Positions 1 to 60,711 of a stretch of 64,000 nt of DNA are shown here, in pieces; position 1 is the first letter of the stretch; the number at the start of each line of letters is the position of its first letter. Location: sequence record PP456877.1. One strand, written 5' to 3'. Position numbers and translations under genes: made by a program. Below the pieces are notes generated by a model. That model was not told where the DNA came from and searched no databases. It saw only the letters and a program-made list of their open reading frames with translations.

Positions 1-66
1 TAGTTACAATAGACAACATAAATACAATTACATATTTCATAATGAATTACCTCAAAATTAATTTTA

Positions 67-330
67 TTAACTATTGGTTTCACCACGAGTATTGAATTCT
101 AAATCCAATACAACTTTAGTAAATTCTTCCAGTGCACCACCCTCGTAGATGAGTGGGTCACTGTCACCCCGGTACATGCTACCTACCGGTACTTGACCAC
201 GAAACACCATCAGCATATCGTTTTTTACTATGACATGATGTTCATCCCCGACAGCAATGTCTTGGATGTGTCTCCAGCGTTCACGCAGTAAGCTGCAAGC
301 GCACCATACGGATTTCAAACGTTCAGTCAT
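67..330 (-). CDS. hypothetical early protein
   Basis: 87 aa ORF directly downstream of the early promoter motif at 364-371. Confidence 0.75.
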   Translation of the reverse strand: MTERLKSVWCACSLLRERWRHIQDIAVGDEHHVIVKNDMLMVFRGQVPVGSMYRGDSDPLIYEGGALEEFTKVVLDLEFNTRGETNS

Positions 331-1135: not shown

Positions 1136-1570
1136 CTAATATAGGTCTTCACTAAATAAATATTTAGTTACTAATCTATTTTCTAATTCAGCTCGATATA
1201 ACTGATTATTATTCTTAGCGATAATTACTGCTTCTTCCCTAGAGTGGAAGTTTTCATACTGATCAATAAAACCTTGTTCATGATCATCTCCTGCATATTC
1301 ATGCAATACCTTAAGACCACCATACATTAGCTGTTGTTGAGTCATTATGATTGATGAATGCCTCGCTGCAATGAAATAAACATCCTTCCATCTATTGCAG
1401 GCGGCAACTATCCTTAATTTCACATCGGGATGTTGTTCCCACCACCATAGACCAGTTTCCTCATTCCAATACCTTTCTTTCATTTGAGTTTTTCTAAACT
1501 CACCTTGTATGTCTAAAAGTCTAAATGCCTCTTCTTTAGACATAGCTTGTAGAATAGGATACTTATCCAT
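1136..1570 (-). CDS. conserved phage hypothetical protein
   Basis: ARH...EQGFIDQ...SREEA..IA...LFSEDLY pattern recalled from many phage proteins. Confidence 0.75.
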   Translation of the reverse strand: MDKYPILQAMSKEEAFRLLDIQGEFRKTQMKERYWNEETGLWWWEQHPDVKLRIVAACNRWKDVYFIAARHSSIIMTQQQLMYGGLKVLHEYAGDDHEQGFIDQYENFHSREEAVIIAKNNNQLYRAELENRLVTKYLFSEDLY

Positions 1571-7051: not shown

Positions 7052-7159
7052 AGGACAAATTCCTTTGTATTGTATTTACGTACTACATCGGTCCACTAGG
7101 CAGGAGTCTGTGCATAGTAGTATTCGCTGAATATCCCAAATGAACCATAGGGAAATAAA

Positions 7160-7177
7160 GCCTCCCCAAAGGGAGGC
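7160..7177 (-). terminator. intrinsic terminator
   Basis: gcctccc-caaa-gggaggc after thyA. Confidence 0.85.
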
Positions 7178-7184
7178 ATTTATG

Positions 7185-11863: not shown

Positions 11864-11890
11864 GATTTCAAAAAAAATTTAATGCAATAA

Positions 11891-11912
11891 AGGAGAGCTA
11901 AATAGCTCTCCT
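11891..11912 (-). terminator. intrinsic terminator
   Basis: aggagagcta-aa-tagctctcct. Confidence 0.8.
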
Positions 11913-11920
11913 ATTTATGC

Positions 11921-12521: not shown

Positions 12522-12534
12522 CTAGATGAAATAA

Positions 12535-12554
12535 ACCAGCCCCGAAGGGCTGGT
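12535..12554 (-). terminator. intrinsic terminator, cUUCGg loop
   Basis: accagccc-cgaa-gggctggt. Confidence 0.85.
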
Positions 12555-12556
12555 AT

Positions 12557-12925
12557 TTATTTTACAACCACAGCTTTACCGTAGTTGTTATCCATACAGG
12601 TTTTAAATGATGTAACGTATGCATCACGTGGGCTTTGTCTACGTGAATACACAACGTGCACCTCTTTAATTGCTGCTGGGAGAACATTGTAAAGAACGTT
12701 ATCTTTGTTCTTCACGCCGTACCCTTTTAGGGATCGTAGGTTTTCTTCCCATTGTAAAATGGGTGTTTTACGCTGACGTGCTTCTGCTGTGGCATGTGCT
12801 ATAAGTGCAACACCATTACAGTAATTCTCGTCAACTACCAACGATGCAGCTAGTGGGTTTGATACGTATAACAACGTACTTAATACGGCCACTAACTTCA
12901 TTACGTGTGTTAAACATTGCATCAC
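12557..12925 (-). CDS. exported protein with signal peptide
   Basis: MKLVAVLSTLLYVSNPLAA signal-like segment; Cys pair. Confidence 0.75.
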   Translation of the reverse strand: MMQCLTHVMKLVAVLSTLLYVSNPLAASLVVDENYCNGVALIAHATAEARQRKTPILQWEENLRSLKGYGVKNKDNVLYNVLPAAIKEVHVVYSRRQSPRDAYVTSFKTCMDNNYGKAVVVK

Positions 12926-26791: not shown

Positions 26792-26968
26792 TTAATTATT
26801 AAAAGATAAATCATAATCACTTTGTCTGCGATTCGGATTAACAGGATCAGGATATTTTCCAGTTTTGATAACTTCTTTTATAGCTCTAAAATCACGTTCT
26901 AGAAAATCTAGTTTTTTAACTAACTCTTTTTCTAATTCTTTATTGAGTAGTCTTCTTAATTTGCTCAT
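26792..26968 (-). CDS. 58 aa protein (not in ORF track)
   Basis: MSKLRRLLNKELEKELVKKLDFLERDFRAIKEVIKTGKYPDPVNPNRRQSDYDLSFNN; fills the gap, GAGAG SD. Confidence 0.7.
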   Translation of the reverse strand: MSKLRRLLNKELEKELVKKLDFLERDFRAIKEVIKTGKYPDPVNPNRRQSDYDLSFNN

Positions 26969-27335
26969 CTACGTATACTCTCACAATGAACCAATTGATT
27001 AGGCCAAAACCTTTTGGTGTGATGGTAATGTCATCTTTATATCCATTTTTAGTGATTACATTACGTAATACTTTAATTGCTTCAGGTGGAATAAGATTAG
27101 CATTACCGGTAACACTATACTCGAAATAATAACCTACACCTGGTAAATAACCTGATGCAATCTGGTTAGTACCTGTGATATTACTAACGTGTTGGAAGTC
27201 ACTAAAAGCATTCTTGTAGAATAACAAAATATTAGGAATTACTTCATCCCTAATAGTAGAACTAGTAATGGCATCCGCCGATGGAAAATAAGGTACTAAT
27301 TCATCTGTTACATTGGTGCTATTAATATCGGACAT
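26940..27335 (-). CDS. hypothetical early protein
   Basis: 131 aa, GAGG SD, first gene after promoter 27382. Confidence 0.8.
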   Translation of the reverse strand: MSDINSTNVTDELVPYFPSADAITSSTIRDEVIPNILLFYKNAFSDFQHVSNITGTNQIASGYLPGVGYYFEYSVTGNANLIPPEAIKVLRNVITKNGYKDDITITPKGFGLINWFIVRVYVDEQIKKTTQ

Positions 27336-27381
27336 AATCTTTTCCTCATTATAAAAGGATAAATATCTTTATGGTAATCCT

Positions 27382-27389
27382 GTAATATA
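27382..27389 (-). promoter_or_regulatory. early promoter core TATATTAC
   Basis: exact motif with TTTAAA upstream on -. Confidence 0.75.
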
Positions 27390-27420
27390 GATTTAAATTA
27401 ATTTATAATGAATGGCATAA

Positions 27421-27441
27421 AGGAGCCCCTGGTGGGCTCCT
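27421..27441. terminator. hairpin terminator, possibly bidirectional
   Basis: aggagccc-ctggt-gggctcct flanked by TTTATG (-) and TTTAAT (+). Confidence 0.7.
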
Positions 27442-27455
27442 TTAATGTAATAGGT

Positions 27456-27617
27456 CCGACCCCTATCTAGAGGTCGGTGAGTAGCAAGGCACCGTAGTTG
27501 GGGTTCGTGTCGTTCCTGACGATACTTTAGTACCCCGGTTTATTTACGACTGGATCACCCCCTTAAAGTGCAGTGCGTTTTACGCAAACTGCCTTGCTCT
27601 ATATCATTGCACTGTGC
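27456..27617. ncRNA. candidate structured non-coding RNA or cis element
   Basis: about 50% GC by hand count, no ORF, several nested helices and a possible pseudoknot. Confidence 0.5.
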
Positions 27618-27641
27618 GTATTTTTATTCGTTAGCTAATCT

Positions 27642-27645
27642 TATG
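27642..27645 (+). promoter_or_regulatory. possible late promoter TATG
   Basis: phiKZ late consensus 40 nt upstream of a virion gene; only a 4-mer. Confidence 0.35.
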
Positions 27646-27685
27646 ACTTAGAGTTATATTTACATACCCCTTAAGGAAAAATGCA

Positions 27686-29797
27686 ATGATAGACTCATTT
27701 AGGAAGCTAATGGGCTCGCTATCAATTACTGAAACTGATCAAGAAATTATCATCAGTGGTTTTGATGGTGCTGCATTCATTAGAGATATTAACAAGTATT
27801 GGCGAACCACTAAATTAGCTACGCAGTTATTTAACACGGTTAGTCGTCGTAGTATTTCATTTTATAAATTCTTTGCTCCTGAAATATATTACATGCTAGA
27901 AGCAGTAAAGAATTATAGAAGTAGATACATCTCTATTAAAACTGTTAATGCCATCCGTGAAGCAATGCTTCAATATACCTGGTTAAAAAATACTCGTCCT
28001 GTAGATACCAACTCTGTACCAGGTAGACTCAATTTCAAGATGTTAGACAAATTGACATTTACACCAGATGGGTCTCAAAAAGCTTATTTTGAAAATTATA
28101 ATTATCGAATTGACCAGTATGGTTTACGTGGTGATATTGTTGCAGGTAAACCTGGTACTGGTAAGACATTCATGACGATGGCTATTGCTGAAATGGTTGA
28201 GTCGGATATCATTATAGTTGTTTGTGAAAAGAAGTCTATTGATCTAATATGGAAGCCATCTATTATTGAGATGTATAAGGAAAGACAAAAAGTATGGTCG
28301 ACCATTGATGATAAAGCCTACAACGGTCAAAGAATACTTATATCCCATTACCAGGCGCAAGATAAAATAATTGATCTATTAAGAAGCGGTATATTCAAAG
28401 GTAAGAACATTACGGTGATTCTGGATGAATCACACAATATGAACGATCCTAATTCTGCACAATCTCTTAAGTTCCAGCAAATATGTTTTATGTCTAACTC
28501 TAATAACAGATTATTAGCGTCAGGTACCCCTGTTAAAGCACTTGGTTCTGAATTAGTAAGTGCATTAAGAGTATTAGACGATCTCTTCACCAATGAGGTT
28601 GAAGAACGTTTTAAGAAAGCATTTGGAAAAGAGACACAGAAAGGATTAGATATTGTCCAACATCGCTTTGGGTTAATTGCGTACGTCATTGAAAAGAAAG
28701 ATACTGAGGTTTTACCACCGAGGATAAAAGCGTATCGTATCAAGATACCAAATGGATCACAGTATACTCTTAATGCCATTAAACGTGATTGTGAAGCTTT
28801 TATTAGAGAACGTGTAAAGTTCTATGCTGCGCGCCGACCAGAAGATGAGAAGTATTGGGCTAAACTAATGGCGATACACGAGAACTCTCTTAAGACCCAG
28901 GCGCAGAAAGATGGTTTCGCTCGCTATAAGAATTTGATTAAAATAATTCAGAAGAATCAAGACCCGCGATACATTGGTGAAGAAATTAAAGAATCTAACC
29001 AATATGAAAAAATGTTTATAGAGCCAACTTTACCTCGTAATGAAATAGCTGCTTTTAGAGATATTAAATCAGTTATAAAATACGTTATGCTAAAGATACA
29101 AGGTGAATGTTTGGGAAGGGTTTTAGGTGCTAAACGCATTCAGTGCCATGTGGACATGGTACCGTATATTGACTGGGTTGGTATCACTGAATCAACTATG
29201 AAGAAAACGATTGCATTTACATCGTTTGTTGAGGTTGTTGATACTGTTGATAAGTACACCAATAAATTAGGTATGCATCCGGCGGTGGTGTATGGTAAAA
29301 CCAATGACAATTTACCTCAAATAATCAGTAGATTTGAGAAAGACCCTAAATTAAATCCATTGGTAGCTACATATGCTTCCCTTTCAACAGCGGTCCGTAT
29401 GACGATGGCTGATACTATGGTGACAATTAATTCACCGTTTAGGCATTACATTCTAGAACAAGCTATTGCTCGAATTTACCGTAAAGGTCAGGATTCACAA
29501 ACAGTCGTATATCAATGTACTCTCGATACAGAAGATGAACCGAATATCTCAACAAGGTCAGATGACATTCTAAAATGGAGTCAGGCAATGGTTGAAGCTA
29601 TTATGGGTATTAAATCTCCATTTGAGATCACAGAGTCATTAGAAAGTTATGTTGATAAAAATAATAATTTTGATGAAAATAAAATCATTTATCAGATGCT
29701 AAAAGAATCATTTGAGAAGTATGATATCGCAATTGATTTTAATGACTTTGATACACGTATGTATAAACCATATCAGCCCGCATATATGCGGTTTTAA
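27686..29797 (+). CDS. SNF2/DEAD-like helicase (phiKZ gp203-like virion protein)
   Basis: GKPGTGKT, ILDESH, LASGTP, EQAIARIYRKGQ; 703 aa. Confidence 0.92.
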   Translation: MIDSFRKLMGSLSITETDQEIIISGFDGAAFIRDINKYWRTTKLATQLFNTVSRRSISFYKFFAPEIYYMLEAVKNYRSRYISIKTVNAIREAMLQYTWLKNTRPVDTNSVPGRLNFKMLDKLTFTPDGSQKAYFENYNYRIDQYGLRGDIVAGKPGTGKTFMTMAIAEMVESDIIIVVCEKKSIDLIWKPSIIEMYKERQKVWSTIDDKAYNGQRILISHYQAQDKIIDLLRSGIFKGKNITVILDESHNMNDPNSAQSLKFQQICFMSNSNNRLLASGTPVKALGSELVSALRVLDDLFTNEVEERFKKAFGKETQKGLDIVQHRFGLIAYVIEKKDTEVLPPRIKAYRIKIPNGSQYTLNAIKRDCEAFIRERVKFYAARRPEDEKYWAKLMAIHENSLKTQAQKDGFARYKNLIKIIQKNQDPRYIGEEIKESNQYEKMFIEPTLPRNEIAAFRDIKSVIKYVMLKIQGECLGRVLGAKRIQCHVDMVPYIDWVGITESTMKKTIAFTSFVEVVDTVDKYTNKLGMHPAVVYGKTNDNLPQIISRFEKDPKLNPLVATYASLSTAVRMTMADTMVTINSPFRHYILEQAIARIYRKGQDSQTVVYQCTLDTEDEPNISTRSDDILKWSQAMVEAIMGIKSPFEITESLESYVDKNNNFDENKIIYQMLKESFEKYDIAIDFNDFDTRMYKPYQPAYMRF

Positions 29798-32239: not shown

Positions 32240-32247
32240 CGGCATAA

Positions 32248-32268
32248 GCCCTCCCGCAATGGGAGGGC
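32248..32268. terminator. bidirectional terminator between convergent genes
   Basis: gccctccc-gcaat-gggagggc with TTATG on both strands. Confidence 0.85.
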
Positions 32269-32279
32269 ATTATGTTGTT

Positions 32280-41243: not shown

Positions 41244-41273
41244 AATCTCAAATTTTTTTTAATACGAAATAAA

Positions 41274-41291
41274 GCCTCCCCGAAGGGAGGC
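41274..41291 (-). terminator. intrinsic terminator, cUUCGg loop
   Basis: gcctccc-cgaa-gggaggc. Confidence 0.85.
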
Positions 41292-41298
41292 ATTTATG

Positions 41299-60661: not shown

Positions 60662-60682
60662 AAATAAAAAAAAAGACATAAT

Positions 60683-60703
60683 GCCCTCCCGTAATGGGAG
60701 GGC
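60683..60703. terminator. bidirectional terminator between convergent genes
   Basis: gccctccc-gtaat-gggagggc with TTATG on both strands. Confidence 0.85.
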
Positions 60704-60711
60704 TTATGCTG

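Follow-up and report, generated by a model that had tools for sequence, protein, structure and literature searches.

The intergenic region between the genes PHIKZ203 and PHIKZ204 of phiKZ, a model nucleus-forming jumbo phage, very probably holds a conserved gene for a small RNA (sRNA) of about 183 nucleotides (nt), which would run from a promoter of the phiKZ middle type to a terminator of the phiKZ type. The region lies in a 64,000-nt stretch of sequence record PP456877.1 (hereafter the window), which is phiKZ DNA in reverse complement. Positions and strands refer to the window unless stated otherwise, and the sRNA gene is on its minus strand. The predicted RNA carries a 21-nt box complementary to the 3' end of 16S ribosomal RNA (rRNA), and from the sequence we put the probability that pairing with 16S rRNA is the function of the sRNA at roughly 0.5-0.55. 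An initial annotation of this DNA had proposed an unannotated phage noncoding RNA (ncRNA). It was right as to the kind of element, and its suspicion of a minus-strand transcript is upheld, while its argument from G-U pairs for the plus strand was wrong and the 16S complementarity was missed. The main features of the transcription unit are as follows.

27599-27628, minus strand: sRNA promoter, composed of an A-rich tract with TAC (27620 to 27618), a 14-nt spacer and an invariant TATAG (27603 to 27599)
27416-27599, minus strand: predicted sRNA transcript of ~181-184 nt (phiKZ NC_004629, plus strand, ~212854-213037)
27545-27565, minus strand: anti-16S box 5'-UAAGGGGGUGAUCCAGUCGUA-3', unpaired in the consensus, complementary to 16S 1522-1542 (E. 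coli numbering), including the anti-Shine-Dalgarno sequence
27416-27441, minus strand: intrinsic terminator of the phiKZ type, hairpin 27441 to 27421, AGGAGCCC-ACCAG-GGGCUCCU, then UUAUG

Using BLAST, pattern scans and a covariance model, we found the element in 20 distinct lineages of Pseudomonas-type nucleus-forming jumbo phages. The named carriers are Phikzvirus (phiKZ, SL2), Pawinskivirus, Miltoncavirus, Serwervirus, Phabiovirus, Noxifervirus, D6 and Viktualia, to which 11 environmental contigs are added (L numbers below are our own designations). BLAST returned PS119XW/PA1C (Pawinskivirus), PhiPA3 (Miltoncavirus), 201phi2-1 (Serwervirus), Phabio, Viktualia and D6 at about 70-85% identity over the core. 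The 11 environmental lineages came from pattern scans of IMG/VR and JGI metagenomes, and the five IMG/VR contigs of known length measure 305-317 kb. The loose pattern CAAGGC...TGGATCACCNCC matched more than 100 random viral contigs, and of about 120 matches in the metagenome scan, mostly random GC-rich coding sequence, only L169, L212, L221 and L282 were genuine. Screening the remaining metagenome matches with the covariance model produced no further copies. The copy in Noxifer was recovered by the covariance model; it represents the 20th lineage and was judged separately, and most tabulations below cover the other 19 homologues.

In every carrier the sRNA gene adjoins the conserved promoter of the helicase gene, in differing orientation. 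It is divergent from the helicase gene in phiKZ, D6, L010 and others, and small genes lie between the two in 201phi2-1 and Phabio. The 201phi2-1 unit falls at about 229020-229199 on the complement strand of NC_010821. In PhiPA3 it stands in tandem with the helicase gene on the same strand, and here the cassette is inverted as a unit, exactly from promoter to terminator.

The promoter is the first mark of a transcription unit. AAAnnTAC(T) stands at an identical distance from (A)TATAG in 19/19 aligned homologues, and TATAG directly precedes the first helix of the RNA. Middle promoters of phiKZ have been described by the motif AAanTTACc centered at about -24 (PMC4666361), and by TACT some 22 nt ahead of the start with an A-rich repeat before it (PMC8244752). 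In phiKZ, AAAAATACG stands 19 nt ahead of the G in TATAG, as in a promoter of this class with the start that we infer here: because the promoter geometry matches the middle-promoter motif, the RNA is predicted to begin near 27597-27599. The arrangement TAC-N14-TATAG has a single occurrence in the window, yet 3.96 are expected in shuffled sequences, and the count alone carries no weight.

The terminator is the second mark. In the terminators of phiKZ, TTATKYYGT comes right after a GC-rich hairpin (Putzeys et al. 2024), and on the minus strand the element has the hairpin AGGAGCCC-ACCAG-GGGCUCCU followed by TTATGCCA. This terminator is kept in the 19 homologues of our alignment A5, with G-U pairs that form on the minus strand; relatives read ...GGGC and then TTTATGYCGT. 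In Noxifer the hairpin is there without the TTAT tail. Scanning the window for hairpins followed by TTAT gave 14 minus-strand sites, of which 12 sit 2-18 nt past the stop of an open reading frame (ORF) on the same strand. The site at 27441 has no ORF upstream, and the same scan found no plus-strand counterpart at this place. The initial annotation had argued that a terminator at 27421-41 without a minus-strand gene upstream suggests a minus-strand transcript, and this was correct; the motif was detected on the minus strand only. Many of the phiKZ-type terminators in the window are near-palindromic, with TTAT on both sides, and can be read on both strands (e.g. 41268-41298, 32243-32274, 60677-60708, 12530-12561, 11886-11919 and 7154-7184), while 27416-27441 is one-sided. 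A generic terminator scanner overlooks terminators of this type. Two plus-strand candidates were rejected: a small hairpin with a T-run at 27606-27630, which is not conserved as such and corresponds to the A-rich/TAC element of the minus-strand promoter, and a TATG after the 27421-41 hairpin, which is not conserved as such either.

Between promoter and terminator the RNA is predicted to fold into a closed domain followed by further hairpins. In the following list, position n of the RNA corresponds to window position 27599-(n-1).

27592-27598 (RNA 2-8), minus strand: 5' strand of the closing stem P1, AGCAAGG, pairs with 27483-27489
27570-27592 (RNA 8-30), minus strand: hairpin H1, GCAG-UU-UGCG-UAAAA-CGCA-CUGC
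RNA 31-63, minus strand: unpaired segment that holds the anti-16S box
27500-27536, minus strand: H2 domain, in which H2a GGGGU/ACCCC (RNA 64-68 with 96-100) encloses H2b
RNA 75-81 with 87-93, minus strand: H2b, with 2 base pairs (bp), then a conserved A-N mismatch and a stem of 4-5 bp that ends in an apical loop
RNA 101-110, minus strand: unpaired AACUACGGUG, between H2 and the 3' strand of P1
27492-27497 (27497 to 27492), minus strand: unpaired CUACGG, the complement of 16S 1509-1514 in the 5' strand of helix 45
27483-27489 (RNA 111-117), minus strand: 3' strand of P1, CCUUGCU
27456-27477 (RNA 123-144), minus strand: hairpin H3, CCGACCUC-UAGAUA-GGGGUCGG, 8 bp including one U-G
RNA 159-179, minus strand: terminator hairpin, whose sequence differs in nearly every lineage with pairing kept

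The five helices that had been picked out by eye in the phiKZ sequence all exist and coincide with conserved helices, namely 27456-61/27472-77 with H3, 27483-91/27590-98 with P1, 27500-04/27532-36 with H2a, 27507-13/27519-25 with H2b and 27574-78/27582-86 with the inner stem of H1. P1 covaries (AGCAAGG, GUCAAGG, GACAAGG, GACGAGG and others), with G-U pairs on the minus strand. The inner stem of H1 alternates between CG, UA and AU pairs, and in H2a 5/5 pairs have changes on both sides. The stem of H3 differs in sequence in almost every lineage while pairing is kept, with 10 G-U and 0 A-C cells. Two clades depart from this plan: H3 is missing in the L163/L166/L169 clade, and the D6-like clade has an adjacent small hairpin in place of the nested H2a.

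These impressions were quantified on an alignment built with the covariance model (A7, 19 sequences, 21 pairs). MAFFT alignments were too poor, and RNAalifold missed most helices on them. In A7, 86.1% of cells were paired, compared with 75.5 +/- 1.1% after shuffling (0/500 shuffles reached the observed value), and 13 pairs had changed on both sides, a level also reached by 0/500 shuffles. The covariation score was 0.417 versus 0.222 in shuffled alignments (0/500). When the 3' partner was slid by 1-3 columns as a control, only 31-46% of cells were paired. Covariation in relatives, which the initial annotation had proposed as a check, is thus significant across 19 homologues against both shuffled and slid controls. 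For the phiKZ sequence itself, the fold z-scores were -4.95 (minus strand) and -4.37 (plus strand), and 0/200 dinucleotide shuffles were as stable.

One structural proposal did not survive. A pseudoknot or switch had been suggested between 27568-77 and 27608-17, but the latter segment lies upstream of the predicted start, in the promoter spacer; this partner is outside the predicted RNA and its sequence is variable in relatives, and the pseudoknot was rejected. H2b has a feature of its own: at the non-canonical site RNA 77/91 (window 27523 and 27509) the 5' side is always A, opposite C, G or A, and this mismatch stands two pairs below the 5-bp apical stem, in homologues too. In the clade of 201phi2-1, Viktualia, L212, L012 and L221, an extra C-A opposition is kept within the apical stem. 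These non-canonical oppositions could be a protein contact or a tertiary contact.

Six lines of sequence evidence point to the minus strand as the transcribed one: terminator, promoter, GNRA loop, wobble counts, RNAalifold energies and the inversion in PhiPA3. With helices assigned by hand in 18 lineages, the minus strand contained 639 Watson-Crick, 31 G-U and 7 A-C cells, an A-C cell on this strand being a G-U pair on the plus strand. When we considered only the non-Watson-Crick cells with Watson-Crick neighbors on both sides, there were 18 G-U versus 3 A-C. Across homologues this is the opposite of the wobble argument made earlier from the single phiKZ sequence. As a check independent of the hand choice of helices, RNAalifold was applied to four alignments, each also taken as its exact reverse complement. 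It gave -15.0, -13.4, -22.5 and -25.8 kcal/mol for the minus strand, and -2.5, -2.3, -12.4 and -20.0 kcal/mol for the plus strand. The apical loop of H2b is a GNRA tetraloop (GGGA, GAGA, GCGA, GUGA) on the minus strand in 16/18 lineages, where the plus strand would read UCNC; the phiKZ loop, unlike these, is a pentaloop, CAGGA.

The most constant part of the RNA is the box. The longest invariant run of alignment A5 lies inside it and comprises 12/13 positions from A37 to A49 (A37-G38-G39-n-G41-G42-U43-G44-A45-U46-C47-C48-A49), and the box stays constant while its flanks fall to about 65% identity. Its partner was read directly from the 16S gene of Pseudomonas paraeruginosa ATCC 9027, which ends ...aagtcgtaacaaggtagccgtaggggaacctgcggctggatcacctcctta and continues into the spacer atcgaag. 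The phiKZ box pairs with 16S 1522-1542 over 21 contiguous nt, three G-U pairs among them. Contiguous pairing extends over 14-21 nt in 19/19 tabulated homologues and over 17-21 nt in 18/19, the exception being Phabio with 14 nt; the Noxifer box, AGGAGGUGAUCCAGUU, pairs over 16 nt by inspection. The complementarity halts at the mature 3' end of 16S rRNA and does not cover the spacer.

Within a 16-nt core shared by 18/19 homologues (Phabio ends after 14 nt), only three positions vary, and all states still pair: A/G opposite U1541, G/A opposite U1537 and C/U opposite G1526. No core variation is found opposite any 16S A or C. Just such a pattern would result if selection maintained the pairing of this RNA with an RNA partner that does not vary. 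Pairing with 16S rRNA is sensible only for the minus-strand RNA, because GGGGG still pairs with CCUCC, whereas CCCCC mismatches GGAGG. The exact box occurs once in the window, where 0.14 matches are expected with two mismatches allowed.

The predicted duplex has an energy of about -20 kcal/mol with the 13 free nt 1530-1542 and of -26 to -37 kcal/mol with all 21 nt, and the predicted cost of opening the box inside the sRNA is 3.6-8.2 kcal/mol. For comparison, the ordinary Shine-Dalgarno duplexes of 58 phiKZ ORFs in the window have a best-site mean of -4.9 kcal/mol, the strongest reaching -8.9 kcal/mol. Box pairing with 16S rRNA is therefore predicted to be far stronger than any phiKZ Shine-Dalgarno interaction. 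The D6-like clade and phiKZ share GACCUCU on the 3' side of P1 (in phiKZ within H3, window 27470-27476, minus strand); it complements a part of the box (AGAGGU/GGAGGU), and intramolecular masking of the box is possible.

A second block of complementarity is provided by CUACGG, which together with CCUUG of P1 complements 16S 1501-1514; Phabio, L010 and Noxifer deviate. CUACGG is present in 8/11 of the homologues that were found without requiring it, and later search patterns required CGTAG, so that its conservation there is partly built in. We give this block little weight because it is less conserved and was required by the later patterns. Taken as a whole, the RNA reads as an antisense of 16S 1493-1542 in which H2 replaces the tip of helix 45. 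It is no sense fragment of 16S rRNA: the similarity is confined to about 20 + 19 nt on the non-transcribed strand, split by the ~55-nt H2 domain.

If pairing with 16S rRNA is the function of the sRNA, it would dock on the free anti-Shine-Dalgarno tail (1530-1542) of the 30S subunit, far more tightly than any mRNA. The docked sRNA would then occupy the platform on which mRNAs dock, and would sequester or reprogram some ribosomes during middle or late infection. More speculatively, pairing to 1524-1529 together with pairing of CUACGG to 1509-1514 might invade helix 45, clamp it open and inactivate the subunit; judged from the sequence, such a clamp is quite unlikely.

Several observations weigh against a function in 16S pairing or against the strand that it presupposes. 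The genes of phiKZ themselves use ordinary Shine-Dalgarno sequences, and for this reason a stoichiometric block of the anti-Shine-Dalgarno sequence would hurt the phage too. In the mature 30S subunit, 16S 1524-1529 and 1509-1514 are base-paired in helix 45, so that the part of the target open to pairing shrinks to about 13 nt. When single sequences are folded, the box is predicted to be partly occluded, and the GGGGG of phiKZ can pair with the ACCCC of H2a. As for the strand, the contrast between G-U and A-C cells is weak on the covariance-model alignment (30 versus 21), where H2b is misaligned in the D6-like clade, per-sequence minimum free energies have mixed signs and do not separate the strands, and the helices assigned by hand could be biased towards the minus strand. 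Finally, in Xanthomonas RTH11, Ralstonia FLC1-1B, Erwinia Ea35-70, Escherichia Goslar and Pseudomonas OBP the surroundings of the helicase gene yielded no homologue. The sRNA may act sub-stoichiometrically, or only on some of the 30S subunits, for example those that are free or immature. Its purpose may also differ from plain inhibition, for instance tethering of the GNRA domain to the ribosome, or protection of the 16S tail.

The alternative that survives best is a conventional trans-acting sRNA whose G-rich box pairs with C-rich sites near the ribosome-binding sites of phage or host mRNAs, such as the helicase leader, the 16S match being a by-product. The sRNA gene stands beside the helicase promoter in every carrier, and in the 5' untranslated region (UTR) of the helicase gene CCCC(C)UU(U)AAGG lies directly upstream of the Shine-Dalgarno sequence and complements CUUUAAGGGG(G) of the sRNA over about 10 bp in phiKZ, PS119XW, L010 and, more weakly, SL2. 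But this leader motif is missing in PhiPA3, in the D6/L163/L166/L167/L169 clade and in L162, though the sRNAs of these phages retain the box, and the invariant part of the box, GGUGAUCCAG, is unneeded for pairing with the helicase leader while it matches 16S rRNA exactly. We thus consider the complementarity between sRNA and helicase leader as real in four lineages at the sequence level and not conserved family-wide, and action on mRNAs alone as rather unlikely. In the phiKZ window the corresponding stretch of the helicase 5' UTR (27660-27680, plus strand) is ACCCCUUAAGGA, with equivalents in L002, L129 and L010; its part CCCCUUAAGG, where the Shine-Dalgarno sequence of the helicase gene overlaps, complements CUUUAAGGGG of the sRNA.

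Our initial idea had been that the plus strand is functional and mimics the 3' end of 16S rRNA (CAAGG-CACCGUAG...GGCUGGAUCACCCCCUUAA), so as to divert Shine-Dalgarno sequences, ribosomal or assembly proteins or tail nucleases to a decoy. The plus strand does resemble 16S 1493-1514 and 1524-1542 in the same order and, in phiKZ alone, it folds about as well as the minus strand. It has no conserved promoter or terminator that we could find, however, the terminator look-alike being the minus-strand promoter; its H2b loops would be UCNC, and RNAalifold and the wobble counts favor the other strand. A mimic would moreover read CCCCC for CCUCC in 11/19 tabulated homologues (CCUCC in Noxifer), which would mismatch GGAGG, and the Rfam SSU rRNA models have no match to the element. 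The idea was dropped on account of the promoter, the terminator, the GNRA loops and the wobble pattern, and we now regard it as very unlikely.

Equally improbable to our mind is a cis-acting 5' leader or attenuator of the PHIKZ204 operon, working by premature termination. In phiKZ, SL2 and the D6-like phages the RNA does lie upstream of gp204-like genes on the same strand, and phiKZ has 17 ncRNA candidates derived from 5' UTRs (Putzeys et al.). The downstream neighbor varies, however, as would not be expected of an attenuator: PS119XW has none on that strand, PhiPA3 has the helicase gene and 201phi2-1 has gp305. Furthermore, gp204 probably has a conserved early-type promoter of its own between the sRNA terminator and the gene. 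This candidate, AAATCTATATTAC (27394 to 27382, minus strand), resembles the AT-rich core of early promoters and is kept in the D6-like and L163-like phages; from its sequence, it would supply gp204 with its own early-type promoter.

Least credible is that the phage once captured a piece of a host rRNA operon in inverted orientation and that the element is its functionless remnant, or that the element works at the DNA level, for example as an origin or packaging site (also among the earlier proposals): two blocks of the 16S 3' end are indeed matched in antisense and in collinear order, but the element is kept in at least six named genera plus unclassified phages, it is bracketed by its own promoter and terminator, compensatory and wobble changes maintain its helices with G-U pairs and GNRA loops on one strand, and the box is invariant between strongly diverged flanks. 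A regulatory leader for the virion helicase operon, which had been suggested as well, finds no support at the locus. The helicase gene has its own conserved promoter, GCTAATCTTATGAC, outside the element, which in phiKZ is on the opposite strand, and in PhiPA3 the cassette is inverted relative to the helicase gene.

The features that flank the element in the window are the following.

26940-27335, minus strand: PHIKZ204, one flank of the element
27686-29797, plus strand: PHIKZ203, virion-associated SNF2/DEAD helicase, the other flank

The 350 nt between them (27336-27685) are 100% identical to NC_004629 213117-212768 and, by BLAST, the same in dozens of phiKZ isolates; the phiKZ record has no annotation there. 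As had been described, the region is free of ORFs (none of at least 30 amino acids on either strand of 27336-27685) and GC-rich (0.47-0.48 over 27400-27624, compared with about 0.27-0.35 in the flanking DNA). The Infernal search against Rfam proposed in the initial annotation assigned the element to no family. Rfam 15 gave zero matches over the whole window at gathering thresholds, and permissive filters over 27300-27720 and 27478-27568 gave chance-level matches only (at most 18 bits, E at least 0.9). ARAGORN found 0 tRNA or tmRNA genes over the window. Searches of Pfam and PHROGs assigned no function to gp204, gp204.1, gp205 and gp206.

Boxes directed against the 16S tail are also found in other phages. 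The 16S tail was searched by BLAST against 50,697 phage records, contaminating rRNA genes being set aside; this search did not return the phiKZ-like phages. It revealed a perfect 17-nt box, UAAGGAGGUGAUCCAGC, in unrelated 96-kb myoviruses of Pseudomonas (XD2, vB_PpuM-KoPa-4, Amme-3 and others), where it lies in a tRNA cluster on the tRNA strand, in these stretches:

XD2 (L161), 1140-1440, minus strand of the locus: non-coding stretch with UAAGGAGGUGAUCCAGC
vB_PpuM-KoPa-4 (L288), 146-425 of the locus: non-coding stretch with UAAGGAGGUGAUCCAGC

About 30 nt before the box there is a GNRA hairpin, UAGCC-GAGA-GGCUA in XD2 and CAGUC-GCGA-GACUG in KoPa-4, which differ by two compensatory pairs. Neither of the two stretches has a start codon at Shine-Dalgarno distance from the box. 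On sequence grounds, they may represent an independent RNA directed against the 16S tail. In the Ralstonia jumbo phage FLC1-1B (L291, 6940-7085, plus strand), a 14-nt box, AAAGGAGGUGAUCC, follows right after the stop of an unannotated 27-codon ORF. It stands 12 nt before a phiKZ-type terminator, GAGCCGGC-GCGA-GCUGGCUC + TTATGCCGT, and about 2 kb downstream of the helicase gene. LUZ19-like podoviruses (e.g. NC_010326, 23906-23926) have a 21-nt match of 95% to 16S 1515-1535 inside the head scaffolding gene. This match recurs in many phiKMV-like Pseudomonas phages and is coding sequence; it is probably due to chance or driven by codons.

Because independent boxes occur in the tRNA cluster of the XD2/vB_PpuM phages and in FLC1-1B, a wider class of RNAs directed against the 16S tail is suggested. 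We tentatively propose, at clearly less than even odds, that nucleus-forming jumbo phages of Pseudomonas encode an antisense RNA against the host ribosome which belongs to this class, would seize the anti-Shine-Dalgarno tail, perhaps unzips helix 45 through pairing to its two strands, and would inactivate, mark or reprogram 30S subunits.

The closest known relatives in the proposed mode of action are rreB and rreR of alpha-proteobacteria, with 16-17 nt of complementarity to 16S rRNA; with 21 nt, the phiKZ sRNA also exceeds 16 nt. In Bradyrhizobium, rreB is a 165-nt transcript with a 17-nt Shine-Dalgarno sequence; the transcript sediments together with 30S subunits, and its translation is impeded by the extended Shine-Dalgarno sequence (Hahn et al. 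2017, PMC5711450). In contrast to the phage sRNA, rreB and rreR are chromosomal mRNAs with a conserved ORF of 14-18 codons behind the box. In the phage sRNA we found neither AUG, GUG or UUG 5-10 nt past the GGRGG core nor a conserved ORF of the rreB type; the one GUG that recurs is part of the box itself, and homologues differ in the length of the frames after it. The phage RNA further differs in being virus-encoded and highly structured (P1, GNRA-capped H2, H3), and its complementarity runs further into helix 45.

Other systems share parts of this logic. 6S RNA is a decoy of open promoter DNA for RNA polymerase: like the sRNA proposed here, it is an abundant structured RNA that imitates a nucleic-acid ligand and sequesters a core machine of gene expression. 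The sRNA differs from it in its target, the 30S subunit instead of RNA polymerase, and shows no kinship to it in sequence or structure and no match in Rfam. The anti-Shine-Dalgarno sequence is reported to be sequestered in Bacteroidetes ribosomes (PMC7797042), and the 16S tail to be removed by MazF-type toxins (PMC12274833). The same 16S 3' tail is targeted, altering which mRNAs initiate, by proteins in these systems and by an antisense RNA in our proposal. The Haloferax Val-tRF is described as a small noncoding RNA, derived from a tRNA, that competes with mRNA upon binding to the small ribosomal subunit (PMC5711459, PMC11009984). It is unlike the phage sRNA in being archaeal, tRNA-derived, located near the decoding site and not antisense to the rRNA 3' end.

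Several ncRNAs of phiKZ and 201phi2-1 have been published from Grad-seq and ONT-cappable-seq data (the PHIKZ298 3' UTR, the p40 5' UTR, the PHIKZ221 and PHIKZ302 leaders, and the gp182/gp277 leader or upstream sRNA). Like our sRNA they are short, structured and terminator-ended, and one is kept across jumbo-phage genera. Unlike it, none of the candidates named in the text of those papers lies between gp203 and gp204 or is linked to rRNA. The supplementary table has 17 candidates of phiKZ that derive from 5' UTRs and go unnamed in the text, and the sRNA transcript may be one of these. In full-text searches of the articles themselves, neither a phage RNA with complementarity to the 16S 3' end nor an RNA at the gp203-gp204 locus was found to be described, and a transposon-mutagenesis preprint makes no mention of this intergenic region.

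To our knowledge, only proteins, such as the ribosome-binding gp014, have so far been implicated in the takeover of host translation by phiKZ. If pairing with 16S rRNA is confirmed, the sRNA would, as far as we know, be the first virus-encoded RNA proposed to target bacterial rRNA directly, and this would account for an intergenic sequence kept across at least six phage genera. Compared with the known kinds, i.e. phage sRNAs and 30S-binding RNAs with hyper-extended Shine-Dalgarno sequences, it could then prove categorically new, and the presence of the box in Pseudomonas phages of unrelated groups hints that the strategy is a general one. The sRNA could also become a tool, as a portable module for binding 30S subunits or blocking the anti-Shine-Dalgarno sequence. 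Should it act only on mRNAs, jumbo phages would still have a conserved sRNA that is new and whose promoter, structure and seed are defined.

The promoter of the neighboring helicase gene (27634-27647, plus strand) is of the late type, with TATG at 27642-45, a +1 at the G of 27645 and a 41-nt leader. Its core, AATCTTATGAC, is present in phiKZ, SL2, PhiPA3, L010, D6, L167, L163, L166, L169 and L162, mostly with GCT or GCC before it, and is a useful anchor for locating the sRNA cassette.

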